A stretch of 64,000 nucleotides of DNA from Macrostomum lignano (taxonomy: Eukaryota): the NCBI GenBank assembly GCA_002269645.1, contig NIVC01001954.1, positions 1 to 64,000 on the forward strand, written 5' to 3'. A program made the translations under genes and the position numbers. The notes under the pieces were generated by a model. That model was not told the DNA's origin. It worked only from the letters and a program-made list of their open reading frames with translations, and did not search any database. Positions within the stretch are counted from its first letter, which is position 1, and every line of letters starts with the position of its first letter. Shown here piece after piece: positions 59 to 62,257 of this stretch.

Positions 59-3000
59 ATCATGGAGCCAGTGGTGGAGAACATCGGCAAAGGCCACTAA
101 ACTGCAGGACACAGTGTCCCAGATGAAATCGGTACGAACAGCGCGCTTAGTACTTGACGAAAAATTCACGTTGCCATTGCTCAGTGTAGCTATTTTGTTT
201 GAATCTAAAACACTTTCAGGGAAACAAAGAGTATTATGAACAGGAGATCATTCTCAACACTAAGCTAAAATCGTTGGCTGTTAATCTCAGCCTGCTGTGG
301 GGCGCGTCACAACACGGTGAAAGCGCAATTGAAGGTCAACTCCAATAGAGGTAGTGCAGTCAGTACTTTTACAACTTTTATGCCTCACTACAGTAAGGAT
401 GCTTAATCGTACATTTGCACTACTGTCTGACTGTCGCACGCAGAGTACACCACAATCGGAGGCGACGAGGCGCTGCCCCTCGACGAGGAGTTTCAGAGTC
501 ACGTGCGCTGCCTCATCGGCATGGGCAGCCGGAAGCCTGAGCAGCGGTACAAACTGGCGCGCTGCTGGTCAACGGACTCAGGTAGGGCGGTTAAACAAGA
601 TTCATTAAACGAATCCCTAGCTGATCTAGGAATTTAATTATTCAACCCGAAGAATCTGTGCGACAACCAGCGGCACCACCCACGTGCCAACTACGAGCAC
701 GGAGACGAAGCTCCGACGCGAGCAAGAGCGCCTGACGGTTCGCATCCTGCAGATTCTGCGCGCCTTCATGCACAACGAGGAGAGAAAACTCCCGGCTGAC
801 TGGGAGGTTCGAACCACGGAGTTTCGAGTGAAAAAGTGAGTATAGAGACCTTATATAGGAGTATTAGTGAAATGCCTTTCTCGGGCAATATGGTGCCAGT
901 TGCCTCGTTAGCGCAGTAGGTAGCGCGTCAGTCTCATAATCTGAAGGAGTTCGATCGTGAGTTCGATCCTCACACGGGGCAAAACTTTTGTCTTATTTTT
1001 TCTACTCATTTTTAAATAAATCTCTCTAGAGATCTAGATGACGACAATTCATCATTCAAGAAAAAACTTTGTTAGAATTTTTACAACGCAAAATAAATCG
1101 ATTTTCAGGGGCCTTCGCAACATATCGGACATTCAAACAACGCTCAACTCGTTCGAACTAGTGAAGCACGCTTTGCCGCATCTGGCTTCCACCAGCAGCC
1201 TAGTAGCCAAGGAGGTGCTTTCACTGCTTGGCATGATGCTGTTTAACGCTAATGAGAGGGTTCAGGTATGTCACGCATATTTCGTAAAACAGTATAAAAA
1301 ACACACACCTTACTACTTAAAGCAATTAACCTAATTTTGTTATTCCAACAGGAGAGCATGCTGAACTACTTTCTACACACGAAGGAAGAAGTGTTCTTTT
1401 ACGCGGTGCGAAATCGCCTGCAGATGTCCACGGCCAACATCAAAGAGCGCCGTCTGCTGATCTCGCAACAAAAGGCGCGCCAGTCAGAAGCCAAATCTCA
1501 GGCTGAGAACCTCAGAGCTACCATGACTCTAGGGATCAAGGCTTTGCAGGTGAGACGGAGCTAATGTGAATGGATAGCATGAAATGGATTTCGGTTTGGT
1601 CTGACAAATTTACCAAGTGACAAGCTGGTAGGGCACCACAACCGCTGTAGTTGACTTTAGGTGACCCGGAGAGGGCGTCGCAACAGCTGTTGGTGACATT
1701 AGTAACCAGAGAGGGCATCACAACCAGTTATTGGTGACTTTAGTAACCAGAGAGGGCATCACAACCAGTTATTGGTGACTTTAGTAACCAGAGAGGGCAT
1801 CGCAACCAGCTATTGGTGACATTAGTAACCAGAGAGGGCATCGCAACCAGCTATTGGTGACTTTAGTAAACCAGAGAGGTCATCGCAACCAGCTATTGGT
1901 GACATTAGTAACCAGAGAGGGCATCGCAACCAGCTATTGGTGACTTTAGTAACCAGAGAGGGCATCACAACCAGCTATTGGTGACTTTAGTAACCAGAGA
2001 GGGCATCACAACCAGCTATTGGTGACTTTAGTGGACCAGAGAGGGCGTCGCAACCAGCTATTGGTGACTTTAGTGGACCAGAGAGGGCATCACAACCAGC
2101 TATTGGTGACTTTAGTAACCAGAGAGGGCATCACAACCAGCTATTGGTGACTTTAGTAACCAGAGAGGGCATCACAACCAGCTATTGGTGACTTTAGTGG
2201 ACCAGAGAGGGCGTCGCAACCAGCTATTGGTGACTTTAGTGGACCAGAGAGGGCATCACAACCAGCTATTGGTGACTTTAGTGGACCAGAGAGGGCATCA
2301 CAACCGCCATTGGCGACTTCGATACTACGAGTACACCTGCTCGCTCATGCCCATACTGTTTAAAGCTCGTTTCGTTTTAAATTTGAAAATCGACCATCAT
2401 AATTAATCGTGCAGCAAATCAAGCAGTACCGCATCGAGATGAAGATTGAACAGGCCAACAATGATCTCACGGTAAGGCCTAACTTATGCTGTATCTTTCA
2501 CTCGTTAGCACAGAGAAGTCACTATGAACAGAGCAAGACAAATGATAGAATTCTTGGTTAACTGCAGCGCCGAGTCAGCCTCACCAAGATGCAGTCGCAG
2601 TCAATGATGACCAAACGTCGCAAAGAGTCTGGCAGTCAAACGCCGAGCAACAGCAGTGGCAAGAAGAGCGGCGGCAGTGGCAACAAGAAGGTGGCATTCG
2701 CCAACGGGCTGAAAGGCGAGAGTCAGGAGCCGATGGCGCAGAGCCTGCTGGAAGAATCGGCCAGCTCCGACTCCGGTGCTGAGGTGGTGAGTCTCTGTGT
2801 TTCAAATGTTTCCAGTCAAATGCAAGTACAAAGTAAATTTGGCTGTCATTGCAGCTGGCTAACAGTTCAAAAAGGGAAATTTTCGTCAGAAGGTGTGCCA
2901 CAATTTAGTTTTTGTGTGCAATATTATTGTTTGTTATTATTTACTATTACTATTTACTATTATATATATTATTATTGTTATTATTTACTTTAGTTAATTA

Positions 3001-6000
3001 AAGTATTGTAGTTGGGAATAGGACGCGAAACCGCTCCAAAAAACTAAAGAAAAAGAAGTCGAATGTCAATTGTTGGTTAAATATTATTTCAATGCAATCG
3101 TCCTATGCAAAGTGGTGCATTATAGACACGCGGAAAGTCAATTGCCAGCGCTCTATCCCGACAGGAAAACCTGGCTAGCCAGACTCACGATGAAGATGAG
3201 ACGATCTCTATGAAAGACGACGGCTACATCGCCCTGGTGCTGAAGGTCCTGGCCAGCATCTGCGACGGGCAGCACTTTGGTCTGCAGAACTACCTGCGCG
3301 AGCAGCCGGACAACATCAAGTCGTTCAACATCGTGGCCGAAGTCTCCCAGTTCATCAACGTTGCCTACTCGAATATCAACGGTGACACGATCGATTTGCT
3401 CATCCAGCTGTTCTCCACGGTTAATGAGTTCTGTGCTGTGAGTTGCTTTGTCAGCTGGGTTGCTCAGATGGCTGTGAGCACCTGGTGTACAGTAAGAGAG
3501 GTCAGATAGGACCAAGATTTTCTGGATCGGGTCTCATCCTACCGATCGAGTCTGCAACACGAGCCTTGACGGAAAGAGCGCAATGGATTTGAATCTATAC
3601 TCACAAAACGGCCTCGTTTTTTCATTGATGGAAACTTTTCTCAAACTTTTTAATGGGGTGAGATTTGCTCCGAAAATGAAATCAAAATTAAGAAAGTATC
3701 ATCAGGATCCAGGTTAGGAGGCTTGTTCAGCCTAGAAGTCATTTTTCAGCGGCAAGACCGTGCGATTGATGAGACCTTGTGGTAGCTATTAGTTCTGAGA
3801 AAGTTGTCAAGGTGAGGCCCTTCTTGGTGAAACAAGTCCCATGAGCTGCACACATCATAAGGCTCTGTGCATGAGTCATCTTACCAGGCCATTTTTCAAT
3901 TATTTTAGTTCAGCATCAGCTCTGAGCTCTCGGTAAACCTTGGTACTAGAAGAGCTTCCAGTACACTCCACTTCGGTGTCAAGAAAATGGGAGTTTCTTG
4001 TCATCTCTTTACTTGACTTGACTCAGCTACAGGGGGTTCTGGGCATCCGGATACAGCGGGGAGGCGTCGACGCCCATTGCGCTAACCTCTGACAACCTCG
4101 GGCAGTTGGTGCTGCGGTGTCGCGCAGGGAGATCCGGAGAGTCCAGGAGGTGGATGGTCGCTCGCCCGGTAGCGGACGAGCTGGCAGATATTCTGAGGCT
4201 TTCCAACGTCGGAAAGGCCCGGGTTTGCGCCGAGGTAGGTGAGCCTGTCCTGAGTAAAGGCGGGGCACTCACAGATGAAGTGCTTCGCATTCTCATCACC
4301 GGAGAGGCAGAAGGGGGCATTCCTCATTGCGGATGTTTCACTGGAGGTAACGATGCCTAGAGAGCGAGAGAGGGCCATGGTCACCGCCATGATGTCCCTG
4401 CGGTTTTCTTGTCACCTCCCTCATCCGTGAGTTTCATGTTGAAGTGAGTGTAGTTAATGAGTTTAAAGAAGTTCTCCTGATCTTTGGAACTTAAAAAAAA
4501 TCAACTGGAAAGTCGTCGGATAGGCGAAACGCGTAGACATTAAATGTTTGTGTTGATATTTCTCTTCTTGTTATTCTCCCGGAGTCTTCAATTACTCAAG
4601 AATATTACAGACTACAAAAATCCCGCAAACAATGATCCAGGGCAACCAGGAGAACCGGGCAACCGTGTACGACAACAAAATCATCGACTATATAAACTTC
4701 ATTCTGCGCAGCTCCGACTTCGAAAGCTGCGAGCCTCAGCAGGTGGTGCAACTGCGCCAGACCATCGCCAACCTGGTGATCTCGCTGATTGAGGAGAATT
4801 CTCCCGAGGCTCTGGTAATCGCTAGGGAGGTGAAGGACACGCTGGACAAGGGCGCTCTCTACCGGCCATGTCCGAGTGCTACGAGGCCCAGCAGCGGACT
4901 GGCAAGGACGGCGGATTCCTTGTGCGACTCTTTGTGAGTTGGAGCGACCTGACGTCTCAGATGCGGGCGCTCCGTTTGCCCTGCGTTTGGGGAATGATCC
5001 TGAGGGATCTCGACGGGACCATTGGTGATCGTCAGAATCCCATAATGATTTCCATCACCAGAATCCTATAATGGTTTACATCAGCAGAATCCCATAATGG
5101 TTTACAGCACCATAATCCCATAATGATCTCCATCACCATAATCCCATAATTATCTCCATCACCAGAATCCCATAATGATCTCCATCACCAGAATCCCAAA
5201 ATGATCTCCATCACCAGAATCCCATAATGATCTCCATCACCAGAATCCCAAAATGATCTCCATCACCAGAATCCCATAATGATCTCCATCACCAGAATCC
5301 CAAAATGATCTCCATCACCAGAATCCCATAATGATCTCCATCACCAGAATCCCAAAATGATCTCCATCACCAGAATCCCAAAATGATCTCCATCACCAGA
5401 ATCCCAAAATGATCTCCATCACCAGAATCCCAAAATGATCTCCATCACCATAATCCCATAATGGTTTACATCACTAGAATCCCATAATGATCTCCATCAC
5501 TAGAATCCCATAATGATCTCCATCACCAGAATCCCAAAATGATCTCCATCACTAGAATCCCATAATGATCTCCATCACCAGAATCCCAAAATGATCTCCA
5601 TCACCAGAATCCCATAATGATCTCCATCACCAGAATCCCATAATGATCTCCATCACCAGAATCCCAAAATGATCTCCATCACCAGAATCCCATAATGATC
5701 TCCATCACCAGAATCCCAAAATGATCTCCATCACCAGAATCCCAAAATGATCTCCATCACCAGAATCCTAAAATGATCTCCATCACCATAATCCCATAAT
5801 GGTTTACATCACTAGAATCCCATAATGATCTCCATCGCCAGAATCCCATTTCAGCCCACTTCGCCAACCCATTGCAGAAGAAGGAGGAGAACCGCGAGCT
5901 CAAGGAGGCCATGTGCGAGGTCGGCTTCACGTTCTACGTGATCCTGGCCCGGCTGTACGACATTGACCCGGCCATGGGCAAGAAAGGTGAGTCCATCGCC

Positions 6001-9000
6001 AAACTCAGCTCTGAGAAGTTGGTCATGTAGAACAGCTTAGCAAACACCTGAGCTAGCAATCAACCGAATCCATATCGCTTTGAATCCCAAGCTAGCTGAT
6101 GTTGTGCTTTACTGTGCTCAACCACTGCTGACTTGCATACAAATTGAGTTCCTTTAATCTCATTAACCCTGCCACCATTGATCCTCAACTGATCTCTTTG
6201 CTGCTCCAATGCTTGCAGATTCAGACCCGTATGGAAGAGGTAAACCCGAAAAAATGCCTACCTTTGCCTGTCCTCGTATTAAGTCGGCGATTAAATATTA
6301 ATCCGTTTTAATTATTGATTTATTGGTCACGGTCTTTTTCTTAAGATGTGAAGAGAAGCACTATAAAATGACTGCAAACAATTGCGGCAAACACAATCTT
6401 AATTACATGAGTGACAGGCACAAGCGGGGCAGAAATGTCTTCATCGAAATCAGAAAGTTACTCAGCTCGCACTGGCGCTTTTTTACTTTTCTTAAAGCAA
6501 GCAGAACAAATTGATTTTCTTCTTTGCCTTTGCTGCTATTTGCTGCTAAAAATTCTTCTGACAAATCGTGTCCTTATCTATTTTGTCTATCAAATCTGTT
6601 CAGTGCAATCGTTTTTCTGTGGTATATTTTCTATTTTAGTTCTTGATCTGAATCCTATTCTCTGTCTGTTGCATACCACCATCTCCCCACCCTTCTCTCC
6701 CCACCATCTTCTCCCACCCTCTTCTTCCCACCCTCTTCTCCCCACCCTCTTCTCCCCACCCTCTTCTTCCCACCCTCTTCTTCCCACCCTCTTCTCCCCA
6801 CCCTCTTCTCCCCACCCTCTTCTCCCCACCCTCTTCTCCCCACCCTCTTCTCCCCACCCTCTTCTCCCCACCCTCTTTTCCCCACCATCTTCTCCCCATC
6901 CTCTTCTCCCAATCCTCTTCTACCCACCCTCTTCTCCCCACCCTTTTCCCCACCCACTTCTCCCACCCTCTTCTCCCCACCCTCTTCTCCCCACCCTCTT
7001 CTCCCCACCCTCTTCTCCCCACCCTCTTCTCCCCATCCTCTTCTCCCCACCCTCTTTTCCCCACCCTTCTCTCTTCACCCTCCTCTCCCCACCCTTTCTC
7101 TGCATCCTCTTATTATTATTCTTATAATCCATTCGTTAATTTACAGAGCTGCAGATTAGCGACATTCAGCAGAAGGCATTCAAATTCTTCAAGAAGAACG
7201 CAATGACAATTGAGATTCTGAAAAATGACAACCTGCAGAAGGTTCACTTTCGAGTGAGAAACAAGGCAAGTTCTGTCAAATGCTACTTATTAGTTAGTAA
7301 GTAGTATAAATAGTGCTATCAAACATAAAAAATCCACTACTGTAAATCTCATAATTCAGAATGTTCTCCGCGAAGAACTCAAAGAGAAGCTGAAATGGAA
7401 CGTGGACCGGTCCTCGCCCAGCACGAAGATCCGCGACTTCATGGACTGGACTAAGGCTATACTGAAGGACATTCACTATCAGAAGAAAGTGCTGTCAAAC
7501 CCTTTTACTATATTGCTGACTCGACTGTGGCTCATCTGGAACCACGCCGCAACCTTGACTGCCGTTATTATCAACCTAATCATGCTGATTGGCCTGGAAG
7601 CTACTGACACGCCCACAATGCTGGCGGACACTGGCATGTTTACCATTCCGGCCAAGTGAGCGAAATTCGATTAGCCTTTTTATTGCTCCTTTTTAAAAAT
7701 GAAGTCTATTTTTTTGTACATGTTTACTCATTTCCAATAAAAGTTTGTGTGAGCCAATCAGATTCGAGGGAGTGAGAGCCAATCAAATTCCAGTGAGTCC
7801 GAGCCATTCAGATGCGAGTGAGTGTGAGCCAAGATCAGATTCGAGTCGACTGAGTGTAAGCCAATCGGATTCGAGTGAGTCTGAGACAATTAGACTCGAA
7901 TGAGCCACAGCCAATCAGATACCAGTGAGTGTAAGCCAATCAGATTCAAGCGACTCTTAGCCAATCAGATTCGAATGAGCCACAGCCAATCAGATTCCAG
8001 TGAGTGTAAGCCAATCAGATTCAAGCGACTCTTAGCCAATCAGATTCGAGTGAGTCACAGCCAATCAGATTCCAGTGAGTGTGAGCCAATCAGATTTAAG
8101 CGACTCTTAGCCAATCAGATTCGAGTGAGTCACAGCCAATCAGATTCTAGTGAGTGTGAGCCAATCAGATTTGAGTGATCCAATCAGATTCGAGTGGTTG
8201 TGAGCCAATCAAATCCGTGTGGAAATGAGCCAACCAGAATCCCAGCCTCAGGCTGAGCAATCTGTTCCCAACTCCAATTCTGATCAGCGAATCTGCCCGC
8301 TGGAAGTCGCAGTTCGAGCACCTGGAGATGTGGAAGGATGCATTCGCGTACACCATGGACATCCTGGCCATAGTCATCCTGTTGGCCTTCTTCGTTGCCA
8401 ACCATCCGGAGCCGCCGAACGTGCGCCGCATCCGGGATCGGCTGCGCCGCCTGCGCCGCGCCAAAGCCGACGAAGAGGACGACCCGGCCGACTGCAGGGA
8501 CCGCGGCAGCGAGGGCGGCAACAAACTGGCTGTCAACCTGTTCAGCATAGCCACGCTGTACTACTTGTCCTTCGCCGCCTGCGCCTTTGCTGGCACTTTT
8601 TACTGTCCGTACTTCTTCGCCTTCCACCTGCTGAACATGGTCAACAATAACCAGCTGCTGCAGGGAGTCATTCAGGCTGTCACCATGAATGGTGAGACAG
8701 TCGGCTGTCTCTAGTCAGTTGTTTCTAGTCAGTTGTTTCTAGTCAGTTGTTTCTAGTCAGTTGTTTCTAGTCAGTTGTTTCTAGTCAGTTGTTTCTAGTC
8801 AGTTGTTTCTAGTCAGTTGTTTCTAGTCAGTTGTTTCTAGTCAGTTGTCTCTAGTCAGTTGTCTCTAGCCAGTTGTCTCTAGTCAGTTGTCTCTAGTCAG
8901 TTGTCTCTAGTCAGTTGTCTCTAGTCAGTTGTCTCTAGTCAGTTGTTTCTAGTCAGTTGTTTCTAGTCAGTTGTCTCTAGTCAGTTGTTTCTAGTCAGTT

Positions 9001-12000
9001 GTTTCTAGTCAGTTGTTTCTAGTCAGTTGTCTCTAGTCAGTTGTTTCTAGTCAGTTGTCTCTAGCCAGTTGTCTCTAGTCAGTTGTCTCTAGTCAGTTGT
9101 CTCTAGTCAGTTGTTTCTAGTCAGTTGTCTCTAGCCAGTTGTCTCTAGTCAGTTGTTTCTAGTCAGTTGTCTCTAGCCAGTTGTCTCTAGTCAGTTGTCT
9201 CTAGTCAGTTGTCTCTATCCAGTTGTCTCTAGCCAGTTGTCGCTAGCCAGTTGTCTCTAGTCAGTTGTCTCCAGCGAGTTGTCTCTAACCAGTTGTCTCT
9301 AGTCAGTTGTCACCAAGCCTTGTCTCAAACGTGGAGGCAGTCAAAATATAACAAATTCCCCACCGAACCTGCTCAGGCCTCTCCCTGATCTGGGTGTCTG
9401 TGCTGGGCATCGCCATCATGTACCTGTTCTCCGTGCTGGCTTTCGCAAGGCTTCGCCGAGGTTTCGGCGGCCTCATGTTCTGCTCGGACCTCAGCCAATG
9501 CTTTGTGACCGTGTTGCGCTTTGGACTCATTGGGGATCTGTTCGAGGTGAGGACCGCAGCAGTGCCCTGAGTCTGGCTTCTGAGGCAGTTCACTACTTTA
9601 TGTATCACCCTACTGTCGCTCCCGGTGCTTCGCTGCCTGTCATTTTTCCCTCTACTGTCTCCTCTGTCACTCTACTGTCTCCTCTGTCACTCTACTGTCT
9701 CCTCTGTCACTCTACTGTCTCCTCTGTCACTCTTCTGTCTCCTCTGTCACTCTACTATCTCCTCTGTCACTCTACTATCTCCTCTGTCACTCTACTATCT
9801 CCTCTGTCACTCTACTGTCTCTTCTGTCACTCTACTATCTCCTCTGTCACTCTACTATCTCCTCTGTCACTCTACTGTCTCTTCTGTCACTCTACTATCT
9901 CCTCTGTCACTCTACTGTTTTCTCTGTCACTCTGATGTCTGCACTGTCACTCTACTCTCTCCTCTGTTACTCTACTGTCTCCTCTGTCACTCTACTGTTT
10001 TCTCTGTCACTCTGATGTCTGCACTGTCACTCTACTCTCTCCTCTGTTACTCTACTGTCTCCTCTGTCACTCTACTGTTTTCTCTGTCACTCTACTCTCT
10101 TCTCTGTCACTCTACTGTTTTCTCTGTCACTTTGATGTCTGAATTGTCACTCTACTCTCTCCTCTGTCACTTTACTCTTCTCTGTCACTCTACTCTTCTT
10201 TCACTCTACTGTCTCCTCTGTCACTCTACTGTCTCCTCTGTCACTCTACTGTCTCCTCTGTCACTCTACTGTCTCCTCTGTCACTCTACTGTCTCCTCTG
10301 TCACTCTACTGTCTCCTCTGTCACTCTACTGTCTCCTCTGTCACTCTACTGTCTCCTCTGTCACTCTACTGTTTCCTCTGTCACTCTACTGTTTCCTCTG
10401 CCACTCTACTGTCTCCTCTGTCACTCTACTGTCTCCTCTGTTACTCTACTGTCTCCTCTGTCACTCTACTGTCTCCTCTGTCACTCTACTGTTTCCGCTG
10501 ACACTTGGCTGTCTCAAGAATCCCAAATCGCACCTCAAAATTCCCGCAGAACATGGTGCCTCGCGAGGACTCGCCAACCTTCGACTCATTCTTCTGGATG
10601 GCCATATTTCACATCGTGTTCTTCATCCTGATCACCACGGTCGGCCTCAACATCATCTTCGGCATCATTGTTGACACGTTCAGCGAGCTGCGCAACATGA
10701 AATGGACAGCCGAGGTGGACATGCGCGACAACTGCTTCATCTGCTCGCGCAGCAACTACGATTTCGAGCACCACGGCCAGGGCTTTGACTATCACGTGCG
10801 CAACGAGCACAACATGTGGGCCTACATATTCTTCTTCATTCACCTGCAGGACACGGCCAAGAATGATTACACCTCGTTGGAGCTGCACGTGTACAAACTG
10901 GTGGGTTCGCTTTGTACTTTTACTTTTTTCTCGTTGTTGTGATTCTTTCTGCTTCGAGAGAATGCAATTTGGGTGTCGGAGAGGGCGCCATTTCGGGTGT
11001 CGGAGAGGGCGCCACTTTGGGTGTCGGAGAGGGCGCCATTTCGGGTGTCGGAGAGGGCGCCATTTCGGGTGTCGGAGAGGGCGCCATTTCGGGTGTCGGA
11101 GAGGGCGCCACTTTGGGTGTCGGAGAGGGCGCCACTTTGGGTGTCGGAGAGGGCGCCATTTCGGGTGTCGGAGAGGGCGCCACTTTGGGTGTCGGAGAGG
11201 GCGCCATTTCGGGTGTCAGAGAGGGCGCCATTTCGGGTGTCGGAGAGGGCGCCATTTCGGGTGTCGGAGAGGGCGCCACTTTGGGTGTCGGAGAGGGCGC
11301 CACTTTGGGTGTCGGAGAGGGCGCCACTTTGGGTGTCGGAGAGGGCGCCACTTTGGGTGTCGGAGAGGGCGCCATTTCGGGTGTCGGAGAGGGCGCCACT
11401 TTGGGTGTCGGAGAGGGCGCCATTTCGGGTGTCAGAGAGGGCGCCATTTCGGGTGTCGGAGAGGGCGCCATTTCGGGTGTCGGAGAGGGCGCCACTTTGG
11501 GTGTCGGAGAGGGCGCCATTTCGGGTGTCAGAGAGGGCGCCATTTCGGGTGTCGGAGAGGGCGCCATTTCGGGTGTCGGAGAGGGCGCCACTTTGGGTGT
11601 CGGAGAGGGCGCCACTTTGGGTGTCGGAGAGGGCGCCGTTTTGGGTGTCGGAGAGGGCGCCGCTTTGGGTGTCGGAGAGGGCGCCACTTGGGGTGTCGGA
11701 GAGGGCGCCACTTTGGGTGTCGGAGAGGGCGCCACTTTGGGTGTCGGAGAGGGCGCCACTTTGGGTGTCGGAGAGGGCGCCACTTTGGGTGTCGGAGAGG
11801 GCGCCACTTTGGGTGTCAGCGAGAGCGCCATTTTCGGTGTCCGGGGCCGCCATTTTTACTAATCAGATGCGTCGCTTAAATTTTTAGCCTCTGTGTTGGC
11901 TCCAAGAGGCGTTCAAGTAGTTCAAAACTTTGCATCTGCAGCCTCAAAAATGGCAAAAACAATTTCCTATGGCGCTCCCTTTTGGGTGGCCCCAAAGTCC

Positions 12001-15000
12001 AGGTCCCCCGTTTGAGTCCTTGCGCGCTCATACTCGTATTCCTCGGTGTCTGACAAAAAAGAAAGTCGAAGCTGCTAAGCACCCTGTGTGAGCGTGTGCC
12101 TGTACGTGTACATGCACAATCCGTGTGCCTGTGTACATGCACAATCCGTGTGCCTGTGTACATGCACAATCCGTGTGCCTGTGTACATGCACAATCCGTG
12201 TGCCTGTGTACATGCACAATCCGTGTGCCTGTGTACATGTACGCATCCGTGTGCCTGTGTACATGTACGCATCCGTGTGCCTGTGTACATGTACGCATCC
12301 GTGTGCCTGTGTACATGCACAATCCGTGTGCCTGTGTACATGTACGCATCCGTGTGCCTGTGTACATGTACGCATCCGTGTGCCTGTGTACATGTACGCA
12401 TCCGTGTGCCTGTGTACATGCACAATCCGTGTGCCTGTGTACATGTACGCATCCGTTTGCCTGTGTACATGCACAATCCGTGTGCCTGTGTACATGCACA
12501 ATCCGTGTGCCTGTGTACATGTACGCATCCGTGTGCCTCTGTACATGCACAATCCGTGTGCCTGTGTACATGTACGCATCCGTGTGCCTGTGTACATGTA
12601 CGCATCCGTGTGCCTGTGTACATGCACAATCCGTGTGCCTGTGTACATGTACGCATCCGTGTGCCTGTGTACATGCATAATCCGTGTGCCTGTGTACATG
12701 CACAATCCGTGTGCCTGTGTACATGTACGCATCCGTGTGCCTGTGTACATGCACAATCCGTGTGCCTGTGTACATGTACGCATCCGTGTGCCTGTGTACA
12801 TGTACGCATCCGTGTGCCTGTGTACATGCACAATCCGTGTGCCTGTGTACATGTACGCATCCGTGTGCCTCTGTACATGCACAATCCGTGTGCCTGTGTA
12901 CATGTACGCATCCGTGTGCCTGTGTACATGTACGCATCCGTGTGCCTGTGTACATGTACGCATCCGTGTGCCTGTGTACATGCACAATCCGTGTGCCTGT
13001 GTACATGTACGCATCCGTGTGCCTGTGTACATGCATAATCCGTGTGCCTGTGTACATGCACAATCCGTGTGCCTGTGTACATGTACGCATCCGTGTGCCT
13101 GTGTACATGTACGCATCCGTGTGCCTGTGTACATGCACAATCCGTGTGCCTGTGTACATAAACGTATCCATGTACGTCCTGTAACTGACTGCCTCACTAA
13201 ACCCACCCGCAGCTCATAGAGGAAAAATACGACTTCTTCCCAATGAACCGGGCTCTCTGCCTATCCGCTAAGGACGAGGACTCCACCGAATCGAAGATTG
13301 ACGAACTGTTGCAGCACGTGAAGAACCTGGTGCAGCATCAGAAAGAGGAGGTCAGATCTGGCTTACAATGTTGACAGGCAAAGCATATGACAAATTAGTA
13401 GGTTATCCTAGGTTAAGGAGTTTTAGGAGCAGTGGCACCATAGAGTGCAACATATATAAGATAAGGGGAAGGCAGTCACGTGATGAAATTTGTACACGAA
13501 GGGACGAGGCGAGCCAATCAAAAATCAGGACAGAGCATCAGCTGTGGAATTGATATGGTGCCCGGTTGAAAGTTTGTACAGTGATTAAAGAGCAGATCAG
13601 TGAAGACTAGATTGAGACCGGCATCCTCACCAACAATGGTCAAAGTGCAGATCAGTGAAGGCCAGATTGAGACCGGCATCCTCACCAACAATGGTCAAAG
13701 TGCAGATCACTGAAGGCCAGATTGAGACCGGCATCCTCACCAACAATGGTCAAAGTGCAGATCACTGAAGGCCAGATTGAGACTCGCATCCTCACCAACA
13801 ATGGTCAAAGTGCAGATCACTGAAGGCCAGATTGAGACTCGCATCCTCACCAACAATGGTCAAAGTGCAGATCAGTGAAGGCCAGATTGAGACCGGCATC
13901 CTCACCAACAATGGTCAAAGTGCAGATCAGTGAAGGCCAGATTGAGACCGGCATCCTCACCAACAATGGTCAAAGTGCAGATCAGTGAAGGCCAGATTGA
14001 GACCGGCATCCTCACCAACAATGGTCAAAGTGCAGATCAGTGAAGGCCAGATTGAGACTCGCATCCTCACCAACAATGGTCAAAGTGCAGATCACTGAAG
14101 GCCAGATTGAGACTCGCATCCTCACCAACAATGGTCAAAGTGCAGATCAGTGAAGGCCAGATTGAGACCGGCATCCTCACCAACAATGGTCAAAGTGCAG
14201 ATCAGTGAAGGCCAGATTGAGACCGGCATCCTCACCAACAATGGTCAAAGTGCAGATCAGTGAAGACTAGATTGAGACTCGCATCCTCACCAACAATGGT
14301 CAAAGTGCAGATCAGTGAAGGCCAGATTGAGACCGGCATCCTCACCAATAATGGTCAAAGTGCAGATCACTGAAGGCCAGATTGAGACTCGCATCCTCAC
14401 CAACAATGGTCAAAGTGCAGATCAGTGAAGGCCAGATTGAGACTCGCATCCTCACCAACAATGGTCAAAGTGCAGATCAGTGAAGGCCAGATTGAGACCG
14501 GCATCCTCACCAACAATGGTCAAAGTGCAGATCAGTGAAGGCCAGATTGAGACTCGCATCCTCACCAACAATGGTCAAAGTGCAGATCAGTGAAGACTAG
14601 ATTGAGACTCGCATCCTCACCAACAATGGTCAAAGTGCAGATCAGTGAAGGCCAGATTGAGACTCGCATCCTCACCAACAATGGTCAAAGTGCAGATCAG
14701 TGAAGACTAGATTGAGACTCGCATCCTCACCAACAATGGTCAAAGTGCAGATCAGTGAAGGCCAGATTGAGACTCGCATCCTCACCAACAATGGTCAAAG
14801 TGCAGATCAGTGAAGGCCAGATTGAGACTCGCATCCTCACCAACAATGGTCAAAGTGCAGATCAGTGAAGACTAGATTGAGACTCGCATCCTCACCAACA
14901 ATGGTCAAAGTGCAGATCAGTGAAGGCCAGATTGAGACTCGCATCCTCACCAACAATGGTCAAAGTGCAGATCAGTGAAGGCCAGATTGAGACTCGCATC

Positions 15001-36000: not shown

Positions 36001-37699
36001 AAAGTGCAGATCAGTGAAGGCCAGATTGAGACTCGCATCCTCACCAACAATGGTCAAAGTGCAGATCAGTGAAGACTAAATTGAGACTCGCATCCTCACC
36101 AACAATGGTCAAAGTGCAGATCAGTGAAGACTAGATTGAGACCGGCATCCTCACCAACAATGGTCAAAGTGCAGATTGGTGCAGAAAAGCTTAATTGGGG
36201 AAGTTCGAACATAAAGTCTGTTTTTTCCTTAAACCGTCTCTCTTTCTGGCTTGCAGGAGGCGGAGCGGAAGCGATGGGCTGAGCTCAACCGCCAGAGGAA
36301 ATGGCAGCGCCGGGTTCTGGGAGGCGGCGGCGGAGGCGGCGGAGGCAACGGTCACAGGGACAGCCTGTCCGAGGCGGACGACTTCCTGTCCGTGCCCAGG
36401 GTGGCCTCGTTCCGGCAGTTGAACCTGGAAGCTCAGAACCGAGAGGCCAGCCCGAATAATAGCGAGGACGAGTACCGGCTGACCGTGTCGCATCCCGAGG
36501 TGGGCTGCCCGGGATGGGAGCCCTGTGTGTCTGGATTGCTGTCCAGATGACTGGGTTTTGGTTGTTATGAAGGGGTTTAGTGTGTTTTTATGTGTTTAGA
36601 TGAGGGTCTGTGTGTTTAGATGAGCGTTTGTGTGTTTAGGTAAGGGTTTGTGTGTTTAGATGAGGATTTGTGTGTTTAGATGAGGGTTTGTGTGTTTAGA
36701 TAAGGGTTTGTGTGTTTAGATGAGAGTTTGTGTGTTTAGATGAGGGTTTGTGGGTTTAGATGGGGGTTTGTGTGTTTAGATAAGGGTTTGTGTGTTTAGA
36801 TGAGGGTTTGTGGGTTTAGATGAGGGTTTGTGTGTTTAGATGAGGGTTTGTGTGTTTAGATGAGGGTTTGTGTGCTTAGATGAGGGTTTGTGTGTTTAGA
36901 TGAGGGTTTGTGTGTTTAGATGAGAGTTTGTGTATTTATATGAGGGTTTGTGTGTTTATATGAGGGTTTGTGTGCTTAGATGAGGGTTAGTGTGTTTAGA
37001 TGAGGGTTTGTGTGTTTAGATGAGGGTTTGTGTGCTTAGATGAGGGTTTGTGTGTTTAGATGAGGGTTTGTGTGTTTAGATGAGAGTTTGTGTATTTATA
37101 TGAGGGTTTGTGTGTTTATATGAGGGTTTGTGTGCTTAGATGAGGGTTAGTGTGTTTAGATGAGGGTTTGTGTGTTTAGATGAGAGTTTGTGTGTTTAGA
37201 TGAGGGTTAGTGTGTTTAGATGAGGGTTAGTGTGTTTGGGGTTAGGGTTAGGGTGTTTAGGATTTGGGTTCCTTCAATCCAATTCCGTCCACTCCGCTAA
37301 CCTCTGAGTACGCACACGCAGTACGTAAGCGCGGATACGCACGCAGGCACACGCTCACACAGGGTGTGCAGCGGTCCGGACCTTCCTATCATCAGGCATG
37401 TACAATCTCCCTGCCCTCACGAGTGAGATTCGCACCTCAGATCCGTGCACAAGTCCCAAGTTAATATGTTCGCGCACAGAGTCGAACCAGGGACTCTGGC
37501 GCGACAACCAGATGTGTTTACCGCTGCTGTCCCGGAACTCCCGCAGCTGGGCATCGCCCCCGCCGCCGCCGTCGCTCCCGCCGTGGTTGAAGCGGCCGCG
37601 GCTGAGCAGCACCTTGGCTTTCTGGACGCCTACGACGAGGACGGCGAGCCGCGCCACCCGGCACAGCCGCCGCCAATCGATAGAGGCGCCAGGACCTGA
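59..37699 (+). CDS. ITPR: Divergent inositol 1,4,5-trisphosphate receptor / RyR-superfamily intracellular channel, 3' part (5' end lies upstream of the window)
   Basis: Exons joined by splice site and phase: 59-131 (tentative), 444-581, 653-835, 1109-1265, 1352-1549, 2415-2471, 2568-2786, 3165-3437, 4641-4933, 5878-5986, 7147-7265, 7360-7655, 8288-8691, 9377-9546, 10550-10900, 13213-13350, 36257-36499, 37547-37699 (TGA). Motifs: RIH-associated LKVLASICDGQHFGLQNYLREQ, EFCAGNQEN, EVGFTFYVILARL, SKIRDF-like STKIRDF, six TM segments, S6 LNIIFGIIVDTFSELR, C2H2 CFICS...HVRNEHNMWAY, DFFPMNRALCL. Apparent 1-nt deletions near 131, 559 and 4865. Confidence 0.93.
902..981 (+). tRNA. tRNA-Met(CAT), elongator type, with 7-nt insertion in the variable loop (intronic)
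   Basis: GCCTCGTTAGCGCAGTAGGTAGCGCGTCAGTCTCATAATCTGAAGG[AGTTCGA]TCGTGAGTTCGATCCTCACACGGGGCA. Anticodon CAT at 935-937; T-run terminator just downstream. Without 948-954 it matches the conserved metazoan elongator tRNA-Met as I recall it. Confidence 0.85.
1665..2305. repeat. 41/42-bp intronic minisatellite, about 15 copies
   Basis: Unit ACCAGAGAGGGCATCACAACCAGCTATTGGTGACTTTAGTA with GTGG/GTAAA variants. Confidence 0.95.
4023..4440 (-). mobile_element. Degenerate 3' fragment of a non-LTR retrotransposon (RNase H-adjacent Cys/His motif; R1/LOA/I-like)
   Basis: Minus-strand translation RRDIMAVT...SLGIVTSS...PFCLSGDENAKHFICECPAFTQDRLTYLG resembles the C-terminal CxxC..E..HxxCxC knuckle of LINE ORF2. 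Frame is disrupted; located in an intron. Confidence 0.7.
5035..5850. repeat. 26-bp intronic minisatellite, about 31 copies
   Basis: Unit GAATCCCA(T/A)AATGATCTCCATCACCA; ends just before the acceptor of exon 5878. Confidence 0.95.
6219..6239 (+). CDS. Candidate 21-nt symmetric (phase 1-1) microexon of the ITPR-like gene
   Basis: TTGCAG|ATTCAGACCCGTATGGAAGAG|GTAAAC. In frame it inserts DSDPYGR between exons 5878-5986 and 7147-7265. Confidence 0.5.
6675..7100. repeat. Polypyrimidine/polypurine low-complexity tandem repeat
   Basis: (CCCTCTTCTCCCCA)-like units, almost no G on the + strand. Confidence 0.9.
7750..8240. repeat. CCAAT-box-containing repeat: about 25-bp subunits in a 75-bp higher-order unit
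   Basis: AGCCAATCAGATT recurs about every 25 bp; 75-bp period over 7900-8180. Confidence 0.9.
8706..9310. repeat. 14-bp intronic minisatellite, about 43 copies
   Basis: Unit TCTAGTCAGTTGT(T/C). Confidence 0.95.
9647..10495. repeat. 20-bp intronic minisatellite, about 42 copies
   Basis: Unit TCACTCTACTGTCTCCTCTG. Confidence 0.95.
10966..11838. repeat. 24-bp intronic minisatellite, about 36 copies
   Basis: Unit GGGTGTCGGAGAGGGCGCCA(TTTC/CTTT). It explains six repetitive ORFs. Confidence 0.95.
12094..13160. repeat. 24/26-bp two-variant minisatellite, about 42 copies
   Basis: Units CCGTGTGCCTGTGTACATGCACAAT-type and CCGTGTGCCTGTGTACATGTACGCAT-type interspersed. Confidence 0.95.
13592..36175. 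repeat. 55-bp satellite array, about 410 copies (22.6 kb), inside ITPR-like intron 13351-36256
   Basis: Unit GATCAGTGAAGACTAGATTGAGACTCGCATCCTCACCAACAATGGTCAAAGTGCA. No spacers, and no ORF called in any frame across the array. Confidence 0.98.
36590..37235. repeat. 20-bp minisatellite followed by short (TTAGGG) units
   Basis: Unit TGTGTGTTTAGATGAGGGTT; GGGTTAGGGTTAGGG at about 37238-37253. Confidence 0.92.
37285..37533 (-). mobile_element. tRNA-derived SINE-like element
   Basis: Minus strand: A-box-like ACAGCAGCGG, B-box GGTTCGACTC (37488-37479), then the core TGTACATGCCTGATGATA...GGACCGCTGCACACCCTGTGTGAGCGTGTGCCTG shared with the element at 62258-62525. Confidence 0.65.
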
Positions 37700-39667: not shown

Positions 39668-48449
<8,782 letters not shown>

Positions 48450-49902: not shown

Positions 49903-49975
49903 TTCCAAGTGTTCTAATGGATAAGGCGTCGGTTTTCGGAGCTGAAGGTTATGGGTTCGAATCCCATCTTGGACA
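49903..49975 (+). tRNA. tRNA-Arg(TCG)-like gene, possibly a pseudogene
   Basis: Cloverleaf: acceptor TTCCAAG/CTTGGAC (first pair mismatched), D-loop TAATGGATAAGG, anticodon stem TCGGT/GCTGA with loop TTTCGGA, perfect T arm ATGGG-TTCGAAT-CCCAT, TTTTT terminator at 49979. Confidence 0.75.
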
Positions 49976-52335: not shown

Positions 52336-55300
52336 ATGTCGAACGTTGACGTCGAGTACTTATCACGTCGTGACTTTAAAAGCGACTCTGTTTTGGATAG
52401 AAACCCGAAAACGGAAGAAAGCTCTCTGTCTGATTTTCTTTCTCGTGTTCTTCCCACTCTCGAACACGTCGAACTACCGAAGATGGGAGAGTTGGACCCA
52501 GAGTCCCTGCTAAATTTGCTTGCAAACCAGAAGACTACTCAAGCTAGCGGTATTCGTGGATCGGAATTGAGCGACAGTGCGTCATGGAGGCCGATTCTTG
52601 GCTGTGGACTTGCGACAAGAACAGAAGGTACAGAAGCATTTGGTGATGCAAATTTTAGTCTTCAAAGTTTGGATCACTTGTCAAGTTCTGCTACCCAGTC
52701 TGCGACTTCATCAGCTGCTGGAACTTCTGCCATTGAACAAATGACAGCCAGTGCCGATTTTGACAACCAGCTGCGACAGGCCACCTTTGAGAATAGGTCC
52801 CGCGATTTGTTTCAAAGACTAATAATGCAAGCTTCAATTGCTCAGGGCAAGCGACAGATAACAATTACTGAGCGCATTCAAGTTCCATCATCTGATCATG
52901 TGGCTGAAATTGTTGGCAAGAATGGTAAGTGTGTTTGTATTTTTGTATATTTTTCTTAACATCAATCATCATGAGATATGGCAAATCATCTAGGCCTAAT
53001 CTAAATAATTTTGTTTTTTATTTATTTTCAATATATAAAAATAGTTGAAATTTGACATTTAAAATATAGTTTTTTAGTGTAAAAAATTCCTCTTTGAGAA
53101 TTAATTGTTGCTTGCAAATATTTTATTTTTAAAATTTCTTATTTAGTAATTTAATTAGCATATTGTCTGGATTTGTAATCTGTAAATTTAAAATAAGCTT
53201 CTTTTATTTAAGTATATTTTATATAAGTTTTTTTAGATTAGAATAGGCCTATTTTGAATTTTAATATTTAAAACTTATTTTCTTTCTAATTACTGGTTCA
53301 TTTATTTTTTTATTTAGCTAATTTTAACTTATTTTTTACTTATTCCAGGCCTCCGCATCAAGCAGATCCGTGAACACTTGAAGGTTTGGGTCAAGACACC
53401 AACAAGAGATGAGCTGCCTATCTTTGAAGTCACTGGAGTGCCAGATAAAGTTGCTGAGGTGAGTCACTGTTGCTTAATTTTTAATTTTCCAACTAATGCA
53501 TACGAGGGGCACTAGATAAGTTTTTAGCTGCGGTCAAACCGTTTATTCAAATTAGGCCATATTTTCTGAGCATATTGAATAAGAAGTTTTATCATGGTCC
53601 CCAAAGTTTCATGCACCTAATTGTCACCATTCTCTCACTGTCGCATTTTATCTCAACAAGGTCTGTGACTCTTTCAGCACTGTAATGGAGCTCAATCGTG
53701 AACACTTTCGTGCCATGATTTTCTACGATTTTAAGAGCGGCTTGACATTTCACCAGTGCCACGAGCGGCTGTCTGCTGCCTTTCCTAACCTTGCGCCATC
53801 CATCGCCACCGTCACCGCCTGGTTCCGGGAGTTCAAGCGTGGCCGAGACAGCTTGGAAGACGAAGGTCGAACCGGCCGACCTGTTTCAGTGACGACACCT
53901 GAAACTATCGACCGCGTGCGGCGCATGATTGAGGCTGATCGGCGAGTGACGTATCAAACGATTGAGGCATGTCTTGGAATCTCATCGCCGACAGTCGCTT
54001 CTATCCTTCGTGATCACCTCGCTGTCCGCAAGCTGACCAGTCGCTGGGTGCCGCATTTGCTCACCACCGAGCAGAAGCAGGCCCGCATGAGCTGGTGCCA
54101 GGAAATGCTGGACAGGTTTGGCGGAGGGACGTCGAAGTCTGTCACAGACATTGTCACATGTGACGAAACGTGGGTGTATTGCTACGAACCCGAGCGGAAA
54201 TGCCAGTCGCGTGTGTGGGCTTTTGAAGATGAAGCCCCGCCGACCAAGGTTGTCAGGGGTCGGAGCACTGGCAAGCAAATGGTGGCAACTTTCTTCCAAA
54301 AGACTGGCCACATTGCGACTGTAGCACTCGAGAGCCAGCGCACAGTGACTGCAGATTGGTACTGCACCGTCTGCCTGCCGCGTGTCATCAGCAGCCTTAA
54401 AGAGGCGCGGCCAAAGTGCGGCGTTCGAGGTCTCTGGCTGCACCAGGACAGCGCCAGTGCGCACACGGCGAATCGAACTCGAGAGTTTCTACAGACGGTG
54501 GGCTTCCAGCAGCTCAGTCATCCACCATATTCACCTGACCTGGCACCGTGTGACTTTTTTTTATTTCCATTCATCAAGAATTCCATGCGAGGGTGCCGAT
54601 TTTCCTCCGCCGAAGAGGCTGTTGATGCCTATAGATCGGCCGTTGAGGGGGTATCCCACTCAGAGTGGCGCCACTGCTTTGAAACTTGGTTTGAGCGGAT
54701 GAGGCGGTGCATCCAAGCTGATGGAGAGTACTTTGAAAAGCTCTGAAATTTTCATCTTTATAACTGTTACATGTCGACCGCAGCTAGAAACTTATCTAGT
54801 GCCCCTCGTATTAAGCATATAAAACTTGGCACATTGCCAAAAATACAAGAACCACTAAATTGTGCTTAAGTCATTCAACAAATAGCCCACAATCAATTGT
54901 TTGCAGGCGATCCGAATTCTGCAGCAGATGAGTGAGCACTTTACCCGGGTGCAGCAGGAACGTCAGACTCGCACTGAACCCACTAGAGTGGAGGAGCGAC
55001 TGTATGTTGAGCAGGACAAGGTCGGCCTCATTGTGTGCGCCTCTGGCCAGACCATCCGCTGGGTGCAGCAGCTCTCAGACACGCACATCGCCACGCCGCG
55101 CAAGCAGGAGAAGCAGCCCGGCCTGCGCACCTGCTTCACCATCTGCGGCACCAAGGAGCGGGTCCAGTTTGCCAAGCAGCTCATCTCCGAGTACGTTGCC
55201 ATGCGCTGCCCAGGCCTGTGGCTCGAGCCCAGCTTGCCCCGCTCCGTCGAGGCTCTCAAACTGGTGGCCGATTTTCATCAGGTGCGCCAGACCAAAGCTG

Positions 55301-55701
55301 AGTCGGCCGCCCCGACTGTCAGCGTCACCCCGGCTGCCGGACCCGCCGCCGCTGCTAGCACCGACGATGTCGGAGCTGACGCCTGCATTGGGATCGCCCA
55401 GATGTCACTGCTGAACGAGCCCCAGCAGCAGCAGACCCTGAAGGACGCCCGCCGGCTCTGGCCGGAGCAGGAGCGGCCGAAGCGCCTGTGGAACAGCGCC
55501 CTTTTCTTCGGCGGCCTCGCCGAGCAGCGCCGCTACTCTGCCGACACGCCCGTCAGCCCCATCACCCCCGCCGGAGCCGCCGGCGCGACCGCTGACTGGC
55601 CAACAGCCGAGCAGCTGGCCTCGCTGAAGAAGGTCAGAAGCAACGAGCAACTTGGCGAGTCGCCAGCACCGAACTCAGCCGCCTTCTCTGGCTGGATGTG
55701 A
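52336..55701 (+). CDS. MEX3: MEX-3-like KH-domain RNA-binding protein, 3 exons, about 497 aa, no RING
   Basis: join(52336-52924, 53349-53458, 54907-55701) with consistent phases. KH1 VPSSDHVAEIVGKNGLRIKQIREHLKVWVKTPTRDELPIFEVTG...SEHF parallels MEX3 VPSSEHVAEIVGRQGCKIK..IKTPVRGEEPVF. KH2 VGLIVCASGQTIRWVQQLSDTHIATP. Confidence 0.85.
53503..54808 (+). mobile_element. Full-length mariner DNA transposon (1306 bp), probably irritans subfamily
   Basis: 33-bp TIR CGAGGGGCACTAGATAAGTTT(T/C)TAGCTGCGGTC (1 mismatch), TA on both sides (53501-2, 54809-10), single transposase ORF. Confidence 0.97.
53685..54746 (+). CDS. Mariner transposase, 353 aa, DD34D
   Basis: Uninterrupted ORF with HTH region, WVPHLL, VTCDETW, HQDSASAH and YSPDLAPCD. 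I count 34 residues between the second and third catalytic Asp. Confidence 0.97.
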   Translation: MELNREHFRAMIFYDFKSGLTFHQCHERLSAAFPNLAPSIATVTAWFREFKRGRDSLEDEGRTGRPVSVTTPETIDRVRRMIEADRRVTYQTIEACLGISSPTVASILRDHLAVRKLTSRWVPHLLTTEQKQARMSWCQEMLDRFGGGTSKSVTDIVTCDETWVYCYEPERKCQSRVWAFEDEAPPTKVVRGRSTGKQMVATFFQKTGHIATVALESQRTVTADWYCTVCLPRVISSLKEARPKCGVRGLWLHQDSASAHTANRTREFLQTVGFQQLSHPPYSPDLAPCDFFLFPFIKNSMRGCRFSSAEEAVDAYRSAVEGVSHSEWRHCFETWFERMRRCIQADGEYFEKL

Positions 55702-59582: not shown

Positions 59583-59942
59583 AGCAGGAATAACTCAACT
59601 TTCTATGTGTGCTCAGCCAGAGGAAGGCAATCCCAAAGTTTGCAGGTTCAATAGGTTCATTTGTGCCACCTGGTCCAGGTTAGCAACCAAGGGAAAGGTG
59701 AGAGAGGGACTTGTGCAGGTATTTTTTAGCTGGGAGATTTTTCGGTGCCTAACGAAGCCTGGCTGTTGATTCGCAGGGCCTCGGGGGAGGACCAGCATTA
59801 GCGGCCGTCGGATCCGGTTGAGTTCTCCGCTGCAGACAGGCAGACAGGCAGACTGACACTCAAGATTACCTGGTCTCTCTCTCTCTCTATTTTGCAAGCG
59901 AAAGCCGTTGGCGCACTGCTGCCCGCCTCAGCTAGGCCTGCA

Positions 59943-62090: not shown

Positions 62091-62257
62091 GTGACCAGCG
62101 GCTCTGGGAAGGGAGCAATCGATGAGGAATGAAACTGGGAAGTGGGAAATCAGCACTGTTTCTCGTCCAGAATCATGGATCGGCAATCTTTTATACCTTC
62201 AGGGCCAGATAGATATCCAGTTCATTGCTGCAGGACATTTTAATTGATTTAATTGGA

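Follow-up and report, generated by a model that had tools for sequence, protein, structure and literature searches.

The first 64,000 nucleotides of contig NIVC01001954.1 of the flatworm Macrostomum lignano (assembly GCA_002269645.1, forward strand; hereafter the window) carry the C-terminal part of a channel gene that, judged from its sequence, is a member of IP3R-B, the third bilaterian branch of the IP3R/RyR superfamily. In its predicted pore IGDLFENM takes the place of the eight residues RSGGGVGD of IP3R1, a replacement of equal length as judged from residue spacing and from structural models of relatives. The gene is new and belongs to a family that is known but poorly studied: IP3R-B was named in 2015 (Alzayady et al., as cited in PMC7992859), and one member of the leech pair ip3rb1/ip3rb2 was localised to touch neurons in 2021 by authors who regard IP3RB physiology as still to be determined (Heath-Heckman et al., PMC7992859). 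The branch has been lost in vertebrates, Drosophila and Caenorhabditis elegans, and because it is absent from vertebrates, flies and nematodes it is the least studied of the superfamily. An initial annotation, made from the letters of the window, had set the gene apart from canonical itpr orthologues in a separate and functionally uncharacterised clade, which agrees with our results and with the published account, although the clade was by then already recognised.

Sequence of the pore and S6 exons

The pore region is encoded by exons 15 and 16 of the part of the gene that lies in the window (Table 1). Exon 15 is bounded by an AG acceptor (9375-9376) and a GT donor (9547-9548), its frame is unbroken and its translation reads GLSLIWVSVLGIAIMYLFSVLAFARLRRGFGGLMFCSDLSQCFVTVLRFGLIGDLFE (...LMFCSDLSQCFVTVLRFGLIGDLFE), with the GLIGD codons at 9523-9537. 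Exon 16, whose translation reads NMVPREDSPTFDSFFWMAIFHIVFFILITTVGLNIIFGIIVDTFSELRNMKWTAEVDMRDNCFICSRSNYDFEHHGQGFDYHVRNEHNMW... (NMVPREDSPTFDSFFWMAIFHIVFFILITTVGLNIIFGIIVDTFSELR...CFIC...HVRNEH), carries the S6 gate and a C2H2 zinc finger, and the intron of ~1 kb between the two exons is filled with a 20-bp minisatellite. On re-reading, the coordinates and strings that the initial annotation had given for GLIGD in a single exon with intact frame were correct, as were the IP3R and RyR strings that it quoted for comparison and its description of the S6 gate and zinc finger as conserved. The S5-pore luminal loop, which it had called very short, comprises ~10 residues up to the pore helix compared to ~60 in human IP3R1. 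Its range of 9377-10900 does cover the pore and S6 exons but spans two exons and the minisatellite intron rather than a single exon, and the intact frame holds for exon 15 but not for the gene, which has four disruptions further upstream (~98, 303, 557 and 4866).

When we searched PDB sequences with the window protein, ITPR2 was the best match (E=9e-45), followed by ITPR3 and ITPR1 and then by RyR1-3 (E~1e-27), and a Pfam search of the assembled protein returned RIH_assoc and Ion_trans, these two alone. Neither GGGVGD nor GGGIGD occurs in the window protein, IGDLFENM standing at the same positions, and the RyR signature (filter GGGIGDE with S6 GLIIDAFGELR) is also missing. The channel signatures of IP3R-B, on the other hand, are all there: an S6 reading GIIVDTFSELR, the short S5-pore loop and a filter region devoid of GGGxGD.

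Assignment to the IP3R-B family

The best protein matches came from M. lignano itself, the closest (P0002, A0A1I8I1W9) being 69-70% identical overall and 80-93% identical in conserved exons, and none was identical to the window protein, which would fit an unannotated paralogue. We built a neighbour-joining tree (200 bootstraps; 220 alignment columns, S5 through C-terminal domain) that included IP3R-A, RyR and IP3R-B references, the IP3R-B sequences (Helobdella, Capitella, Lottia and Saccoglossus) and their family assignment being taken from the supplement of PMC7992859. The window protein paired with P0002 (98-100% support) and fell with the published IP3RB references into a clade supported at 99%, IP3R-A and RyR each forming a clade of their own at 100%. 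An extended tree, to which we added full-length relatives that were retrieved by an exhaustive HMMER search and named through cluster look-up, supported the IP3R-B clade at 100% and placed Salpingoeca rosetta PTSG_02461, S. infusionum, Corallochytrium and Capsaspora CAOG_04510 within it. In neither tree did the window protein group with ITPR1-3 and invertebrate IP3R-A. The initial annotation had proposed a tree of this composition, with IP3R, RyR and invertebrate and protist relatives, as a check on its view of a separate clade, and the 99-100% support for IP3R-B bears that view out.

Other comparisons were made with the relatives. Two Helobdella sequences in the supplement tree of PMC7992859 are without the GGG filter and are therefore IP3RB genes; one of them contains our match P0014. 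Full-length relatives measure 2,473-2,819 residues. Three of them, P0061, P0063 and P0064, show the complete IP3R-type domain order (Ins145_P3_rec, MIR, RIH, RIH_assoc, Ion_trans), and neither SPRY domains nor RyR repeats were found in these three. A Foldseek search with the AlphaFold model of the closest relative returned IP3R3/IP3R1 as best matches (TMq 0.55), then RyR1. A full-text literature search gave nothing relevant for the GLIGD string and, besides PMC7992859, only passing mentions of IP3R-B, the 2015 founding paper not being covered by it.

Set against the known systems, the window protein shares with IP3R-B of Helobdella, Capitella, Lottia and Saccoglossus the S6 sequence, the short S5-pore loop, the non-glycine loop after the pore helix and the same RIH_assoc variant (CDGQH ... 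NEF.[AS]GN), and differs in that the window copy, a new paralogue sister to A0A1I8I1W9 but only ~70-85% identical to it, has four frame disruptions and reads FGLIGD compared to YGLIGD in most spiralians. With IP3R-A (ITPR1-3) it has in common the overall fold (in the model of the relative), the pore-helix Cys and G-L, the Phe and Asp of the S6 gate, the C2H2 zinc finger, the C-terminal 'DFFP..RA.SL', RIH_assoc and the spacing from the pore-helix Cys to S6; by contrast, IGDLFENM stands for GGGVGD, Met, Leu or Ile stands at the luminal position equivalent to D2551, the S5-pore loop is far shorter, the clade is separate and half of the IP3-coordinating residues are replaced in full-length relatives. 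RyR resembles it in the short S5-pore loop, the superfamily membership, the zinc finger and the acidic Ca2+-sensor positions in the equivalent domain, but has GGGIGDE, reads GLIIDAF in S6 where the window protein reads GIIVDTF, belongs to a separate clade and measures ~5,000 residues, whereas full-length IP3R-B relatives have ~2,500-2,800 without SPRY/RyR repeats. The holozoan protist proteins (PTSG_02461, S. infusionum, Corallochytrium and CAOG_04510) share the 100% clade, the S6 signature and the loop length; yet those of choanoflagellates and Corallochytrium keep GGGLGE, and that of Capsaspora has the non-GGG sequence GLENGLASVG.

Equal length of the filter block

The initial annotation had described a channel in which five filter residues (RSGGG) are missing. 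The spacing of the pore argues otherwise: counted from the pore-helix Cys as far as 'LN' in S6, the window protein and human IP3R1 both have 50 residues, the same value is the mode for 74 GGG-type and for 66 non-GGG relatives, and the choanoflagellate GGGLGE relatives likewise have 50. In an ungapped alignment of the window protein with P0028, a GGGLGE-type protein of the same clade, five aromatic residues located between filter and S6 (F27, F30, F31, W32 and F36) are in register. HMMER also aligns the filter without gaps, and MAFFT places a 2-residue gap and a 2-residue insertion there. The alignment behind the proposed deletion requires a 5-residue gap and a compensating 5-residue insertion directly after GD, at a gain in substitution score (23-31) equal to the cost of the two gaps. 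The gapped and ungapped scores are equivalent, and sequence scoring alone is indecisive; what decides between them is loop length together with the helix limits predicted by structural models.

In the AlphaFold2 model of P0002 (GLIGD type, pLDDT of the pore ~90) the pore helix ends at position 11 after the Cys (..RFGLI), G-D forms a coil, LFDN a helical turn, and S6 begins at the Phe of SFDSF. In the model of P0028 (GGGLGE type, pLDDT 88) the pore helix also ends at position 11, followed by a coil (NGGG) and a turn (LGE), and S6 starts at the Phe equivalent to that of P0002. Because the 50-residue spacing is equal and the helix limits coincide in the two models, the pore loop is not shortened, and RSGGGVGD is replaced by IGDLFENM, a block of equal length. 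The Asp of GLIGD occupies the position of the first filter glycine, and the position of the canonical luminal Asp is taken by Met (by a hydrophobic residue in 58 of the 66 non-GGG relatives). The window protein has neither the glycine triplet nor the luminal Asp that mark the canonical filter. Anchoring the alignment on 'GD' is a tempting misreading that mimics a five-residue deletion. No second or alternative copy of the pore exon was found in the window.

Filter replacement across bilaterian IP3R-B

Contrary to the reading of the altered filter as a property of this one gene, proteins of Paralvinella, Candidula, Patella, Lymnaea, Lottia, Pomacea and Tubulanus carry the same string, R-[FY]-G-L-I-G-D-[LIM]-F-[ED], with close variants in Helobdella (GLVGD, GLVGQ) and Capitella (GLTAE). 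A sister group from annelids and molluscs has the motif H-H-G-[LF]-x-[DE]-G-M-Y; the corresponding strings are RYGLLESFHE and RFGLIDGLQE in Saccoglossus and RYGLMENLHK in Branchiostoma. GGGxGD is absent from every bilaterian IP3R-B string that we compared (flatworm, annelid, mollusc, nemertean, hemichordate and amphioxus) and from all 11 of the sequences with GIIVDTF in the supplement of PMC7992859, and GGGLGE is kept in Salpingoeca and Corallochytrium of the same clade. By sequence, then, replacement of the filter is common to bilaterian IP3R-B in general and not peculiar to the window gene. As a separate observation, the Capitella model Ctel_203606 from the same supplement contains two successive versions of the S5-pore segment, …MLHRGAAIG… and …TVHRGLIDGMYNF…, so that this annelid IP3R-B gene may have pore exons in tandem, perhaps used in a mutually exclusive way.

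Gate, Ca2+ sensor and ligand site

The S6 gate motif G-I-I-V-D-T-F-S-E-L-R is near-invariant in the IP3R-B family: among 77 sequences G440 and F446 are invariant, and I441, I442, D444, T445, L449 and R450 are at least 90% conserved. At the Ca2+ sensor, for which the acidic residues are E3893/E3967 in RyR1 and E1882/E1946 in IP3R3, LCEGHN aligns with ICDGQH (Asp) and LTEY.QGP with VNEFCAG (Glu), and the first acidic position is Asp in all IP3R-B proteins examined. The window protein thus carries, as far as sequence can tell, the signature of Ca2+-activated gating, namely two acidic positions and a C2H2 zinc finger.

For the ligand site we used as reference set R265, T266, T267, G268, R269, R504, K508, R511, Y567, R568 and K569 of IP3R1. 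In the full-length relative from Tubulanus, K508, R511 and K569 are kept and T266, T267, G268, R269, Y567 and R568 are replaced, and the pattern in Helobdella IP3RB, read directly, is similar. Since R269 is required for IP3 binding in IP3R1 (PMC7939385) and these relatives are without T266, T267, G268 and R269, canonical gating by IP3 is unlikely. Because full-length relatives have lost part of their IP3-binding residues, the label 'IP3 receptor type 1/2/3-like' that many database entries give to members of IP3R-B is also misleading.

From the retained S6 gate, zinc finger and both Ca2+-sensor positions we infer a tetrameric intracellular cation channel that would be gated through S6 and the linker as elsewhere in the superfamily, probably in dependence on cytosolic Ca2+. 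The narrowest part of its pore would probably be ringed by the Asp of GLIGD at the C-terminal end of the pore helix, and a short helical turn (LFEN) with a second acidic ring would follow, so that acidic side chains would take the place of the backbone carbonyls of a glycine loop. Candidate filter acids are the Asp that the GLIGD subclade has at position 13 and the Glu/Asp that roughly half of the non-GGG members have at position 16. With an acidic side-chain filter, conductance and selectivity should differ from those of IP3R and RyR, and the activating ligand is unlikely to be IP3 in its canonical binding mode. In polycystin and mucolipin TRP channels an L-G-D sequence (L641-G642-D643 in PKD2) is followed by a second pore helix; the window protein resembles them in having Gly-Asp right after the first pore helix and, in the AlphaFold model of its relative, a short helical turn thereafter, but there is no homology and the likeness consists of three residues and a monomer prediction.

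Taken as a whole, the observations are probably best explained by an IP3R-B channel with a non-glycine filter of equal length, a conserved gate, linker and Ca2+ sensor, an acidic-lined pore and a non-canonical ligand. Possible but doubtful is the wider proposal that bilaterian IP3R-B constitutes a third distinct class of release channel, with a side-chain filter made of an Asp ring and a second acidic ring, that is gated by cytosolic Ca2+ and/or a non-IP3 ligand, acquired its altered filter after the choanoflagellate split and survives in most invertebrate phyla, flatworms among them. Gate, linker and Ca2+-sensor positions that are retained alongside a loop of normal length without the glycines essential to IP3R raise the questions by what means such a pore would discriminate between ions and whether ions pass through it in the first place.

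Alternative explanations

Two readings would remove the window gene from this picture, and neither agrees with the comparisons above. That it is a fast-diverged flatworm orthologue of canonical IP3R-A might be suggested by automatic annotations, which name many relatives 'inositol 1,4,5-trisphosphate receptor type 1/2/3-like', and by IP3R3 and IP3R1 as top structural matches, yet it is contradicted by the sequence trees, in which annelid, mollusc and beetle IP3R-A lie with the human receptors in the separate 100% clade. Both kinds of receptor coexist in annelids and molluscs, a Schistosoma IP3R-like protein has conserved GGGXGD and all Schistosoma homologues covered by the parasite survey of Prole & Taylor are of the GGGXGD type (PMC3194816), and the window protein has its short S5-pore loop and reads GIIVDTFSELR in S6 where IP3R-A reads GVIIDTFADLR; we regard this orthology as scarcely credible. 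Equally implausible in our judgement is a canonical IP3R gene whose GGG was removed by an artefact of assembly or annotation (local deletion or mis-join), an eventuality that the initial annotation had itself named as fatal to its claim. The region is indeed very repeat-rich and the gene has frame problems elsewhere, but the pore exon is continuous and in frame with good splice sites, the loop has its normal length without a second exon copy in the window, and the same string is present in independent genomic and transcriptomic data from flatworms, annelids, molluscs and one nemertean. This conservation across phyla refutes the artefact for practical purposes.

Two other readings accept IP3R-B membership and bear on function, and several observations count against the acidic-lined channel that we favour. 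The trees are simple distance trees on a short alignment, with weak branching within the IP3R-B clade (27-58%). The ligand site was read in relatives alone, the N-terminus of the window gene lying outside the window, and the AlphaFold models are monomers of relatives and not of the window protein. The acidic positions vary, position 13 being Asp in the GLIGD subclade and Gly in others, and position 16 being acidic in 52% of the 66 non-GGG relatives. A single Gly-to-Ser change in the GGGXG filter of IP3R2 produces a dead pore, G2506R/A does the same in IP3R1 and single glycine changes there abolish IP3R function (PMC7939385), so a pore without filter glycines, unless rebuilt, may by analogy not conduct. 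Our literature search, which did not cover the 2015 founding paper, returned no functional data on any animal IP3R-B. That founding study (Alzayady and colleagues) reportedly saw neither IP3 binding nor Ca2+ release by the Capsaspora IP3R-B with its assays. The effect of the glycine substitutions, the Capsaspora result and a post-helix loop that is far more variable in IP3R-B (GLIGDLFE, GLSDGMYN, GLLESFHE, GLIISLFE) than the canonical filter is in IP3R-A/RyR would suit a non-conducting protein that serves as scaffold, sensor or modulatory subunit. We nonetheless consider a dead pore unlikely: the S6 gate is near-invariant, and the pore-helix Cys, the helix-ending G-L and the S6 hydrophobic pattern are kept, a degree of conservation that would be difficult to account for if there were no gated pore. 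The family has also been maintained, often in multiple copies, in at least six phyla. The other reading concerns this particular copy. Relative to P0059 of M. lignano it has four single-base frame disruptions, at ~98 (+1), 303 (+1), 557 (-1) and 4866 (-1), or 4 per ~3.6 kb of coding sequence, all upstream of the pore exon, with the pore and S6 exons intact. These may reflect a pseudogene or assembly errors. That the copy is an inactivated or decaying duplicate making no full-length channel, which would leave the family assignment unaffected, is a substantial possibility, though not the one we prefer. Several observations point to real lesions: four exons of an NLK gene in the window show no frame disruption compared to homologues, the ankyrin/TRPM-like, KH and mariner transposase open reading frames (ORFs) of the window are all open, and the general rate of indel errors looks low because the 22.6-kb satellite array contains at most four single-base length changes; in addition, M. 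lignano has several paralogues, and the database entries P0004 and P0046 look like translations across frameshifts. On the other side, splice sites are usable and phases correct in each of the 19 exons, the only in-frame stops are those caused by the shifts, and identity to the M. lignano protein is 93% in RIH_assoc and 81-85% in S6/zinc finger and pre-S1 versus 36-56% in linkers, as would be expected under selection. Moreover, each of the four sites has a GGCC or GCGC sequence context, which makes a systematic base-calling or polishing error plausible, and three of the four fall in the first three exons, within the first 560 bases of the window.

Gene structure and other features of the window

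We assembled the exons by tblastn guided by the M. lignano proteins P0059, P0002 and P0001, reading splice sites and phases by hand. The start of the gene and its N-terminal two-thirds, including the ligand-binding region, lie upstream of the window.

Table 1. Coordinates of the IP3R-B gene and of other features in the window
Feature	Position	Strand	Remarks
IP3R-B gene, part in window	59-37699	+	19 exons, ~1,190 C-terminal codons, stop TGA 37697-37699; tblastn with P0059, P0002, P0001
Exon 1 in window	59-131	+	IMEPVVENIGKG / KLQDTVSQMKS; frame switch near 95-101, apparent +1
Exon 2	220-350	+	GNKEYYEQEIILNTKLKSLAVNLSLLWG / ARHNTVKAQLKVNSNR; frame switch near 303-306, apparent +1
Exon 3	444-581	+	EYTTIGGDEALPLDEEFQSHVRCLIGMGSRKPEQRYKLA / ALLVNGL; frame switch near 556-560, apparent -1
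Exon 4	653-835	+	RICATTSGTTHV...LTVRILQILRAFMHNEERKLPADWEVRTTEFRVK
tRNA-Met (CAT)	901-982		ARAGORN; 82 nt
Exon 5	1109-1265	+	
Exon 6	1352-1549	+	
Exon 7	2415-2471	+	
Exon 8	2568-2786	+	Variable linker, Ser/Lys-rich
Exon 9	3165-3437	+	RIH_assoc domain (Pfam E=4e-19); 93% identity to P0059; Ca2+-sensor acidic positions ICDGQH (E to D), VNEFCA (E kept)
Exon 10	4641-4933	+	1 nt missing at 4866-4867, between ...GALYR and MSECYEAQQ
Exon 11	5878-5986	+	
Exon 12	7147-7265	+	Followed by GC-AG intron, donor AAG/GCAAGT at 7266
Intron	7266-7359	+	GC-AG
Exon 13	7360-7655	+	NVLREELKEKLKWNVDRSSPSTKIRDF...; pre-S1 and S1
Exon 14	8288-8691	+	S2 to start of S5, ...YFFAFHLLNMVNNNQLLQGVIQAVTMN; acceptor picked by phase, less certain than others
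Exon 15	9377-9546	+	S5, short luminal loop, pore helix, start of filter block
Predicted pore helix	9490-9531	+	Limits transferred from P0002 AlphaFold model
Pore-helix Cys codon	9499-9501	+	
Exon 16	10550-10900	+	End of filter block (NM), luminal loop, S6, zinc finger
S6 gate	10646-10693	+	LNIIFGIIVDTFSELR
C2H2 zinc finger	10733-10810	+	CFIC...HVRNEH
Exon 17	13213-13350	+	LIEEKYDFFPMNRALCLSAKDEDSTESKIDELLQHVKNLVQHQKEE
Intron	13351-36256	+	22.9 kb, nearly all 55-bp satellite
Satellite array	13587-36176		22.6 kb, 55-bp unit, 411 copies, 98% matches
Exon 18	36257-36499	+	Coiled-coil and Gly-run tail
Exon 19, last coding	37547-37699	+	...EQHLGFLDAYDEDGEP..., ends in stop codon
Intron minisatellites	1630-2319, 5033-5849, 6682-7111, 7750-8211, 8706-9311, 9650-10505, 10968-11841, 12106-13173, 36587-37260		
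NLK gene exons	~40902-46125	-	65-75% identity to animal NLK in catalytic-loop exon
tRNA-Arg (TCG)	49903-49975		ARAGORN; 73 nt
Mariner/Mos1-type transposase ORF	53685-54746		Intact, 353 amino acids; HTH_48, DDE_3, Transposase_1
ORF downstream of transposase	54901-55701		KH_1 match
Ankyrin/TRPM2-like ORF	59892-62132		746 amino acids, uninterrupted, 64% G+C
Purine-rich low complexity	62929-64000		~1 kb, (GA)n-like, at window end

With the exception of the GC-AG intron that follows exon 12, all introns of the channel gene are GT-AG. Nearly every one of them has a minisatellite that is unrelated to those of the other introns, consisting of 16-60 copies of a unit of 14 to 77 bp, and the 55-bp satellite array likewise lies inside an intron of the gene; 9 of its 411 copies deviate from 55 bp. 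In UniRef, the M. lignano entries P0004 and P0046 appear as frameshifted-looking versions of a P0001-like IP3R-B gene (CFATFLRFGFDWRLVRNLV for CFVTILRFGLIGDLFENLV); frame problems in IP3R-B genes therefore extend beyond the window.

The tRNA-Met gene, which is located inside an intron of the channel gene, shows an apparent short internal duplication near the T arm. Exons of the Nemo-like kinase (NLK) gene lie on the minus strand downstream of the channel gene. The mariner transposase ORF is flanked by two ORFs, the downstream one with the KH_1 match, and may have inserted recently into an intron of a gene with a KH domain. The 746-residue ORF, in which ankyrin repeats occur together with a TRPM2-like domain, probably represents the N-terminal exon of a further cation-channel gene, and the purine-rich sequence at the end of the window has a higher-order period of ~190-216 bp.

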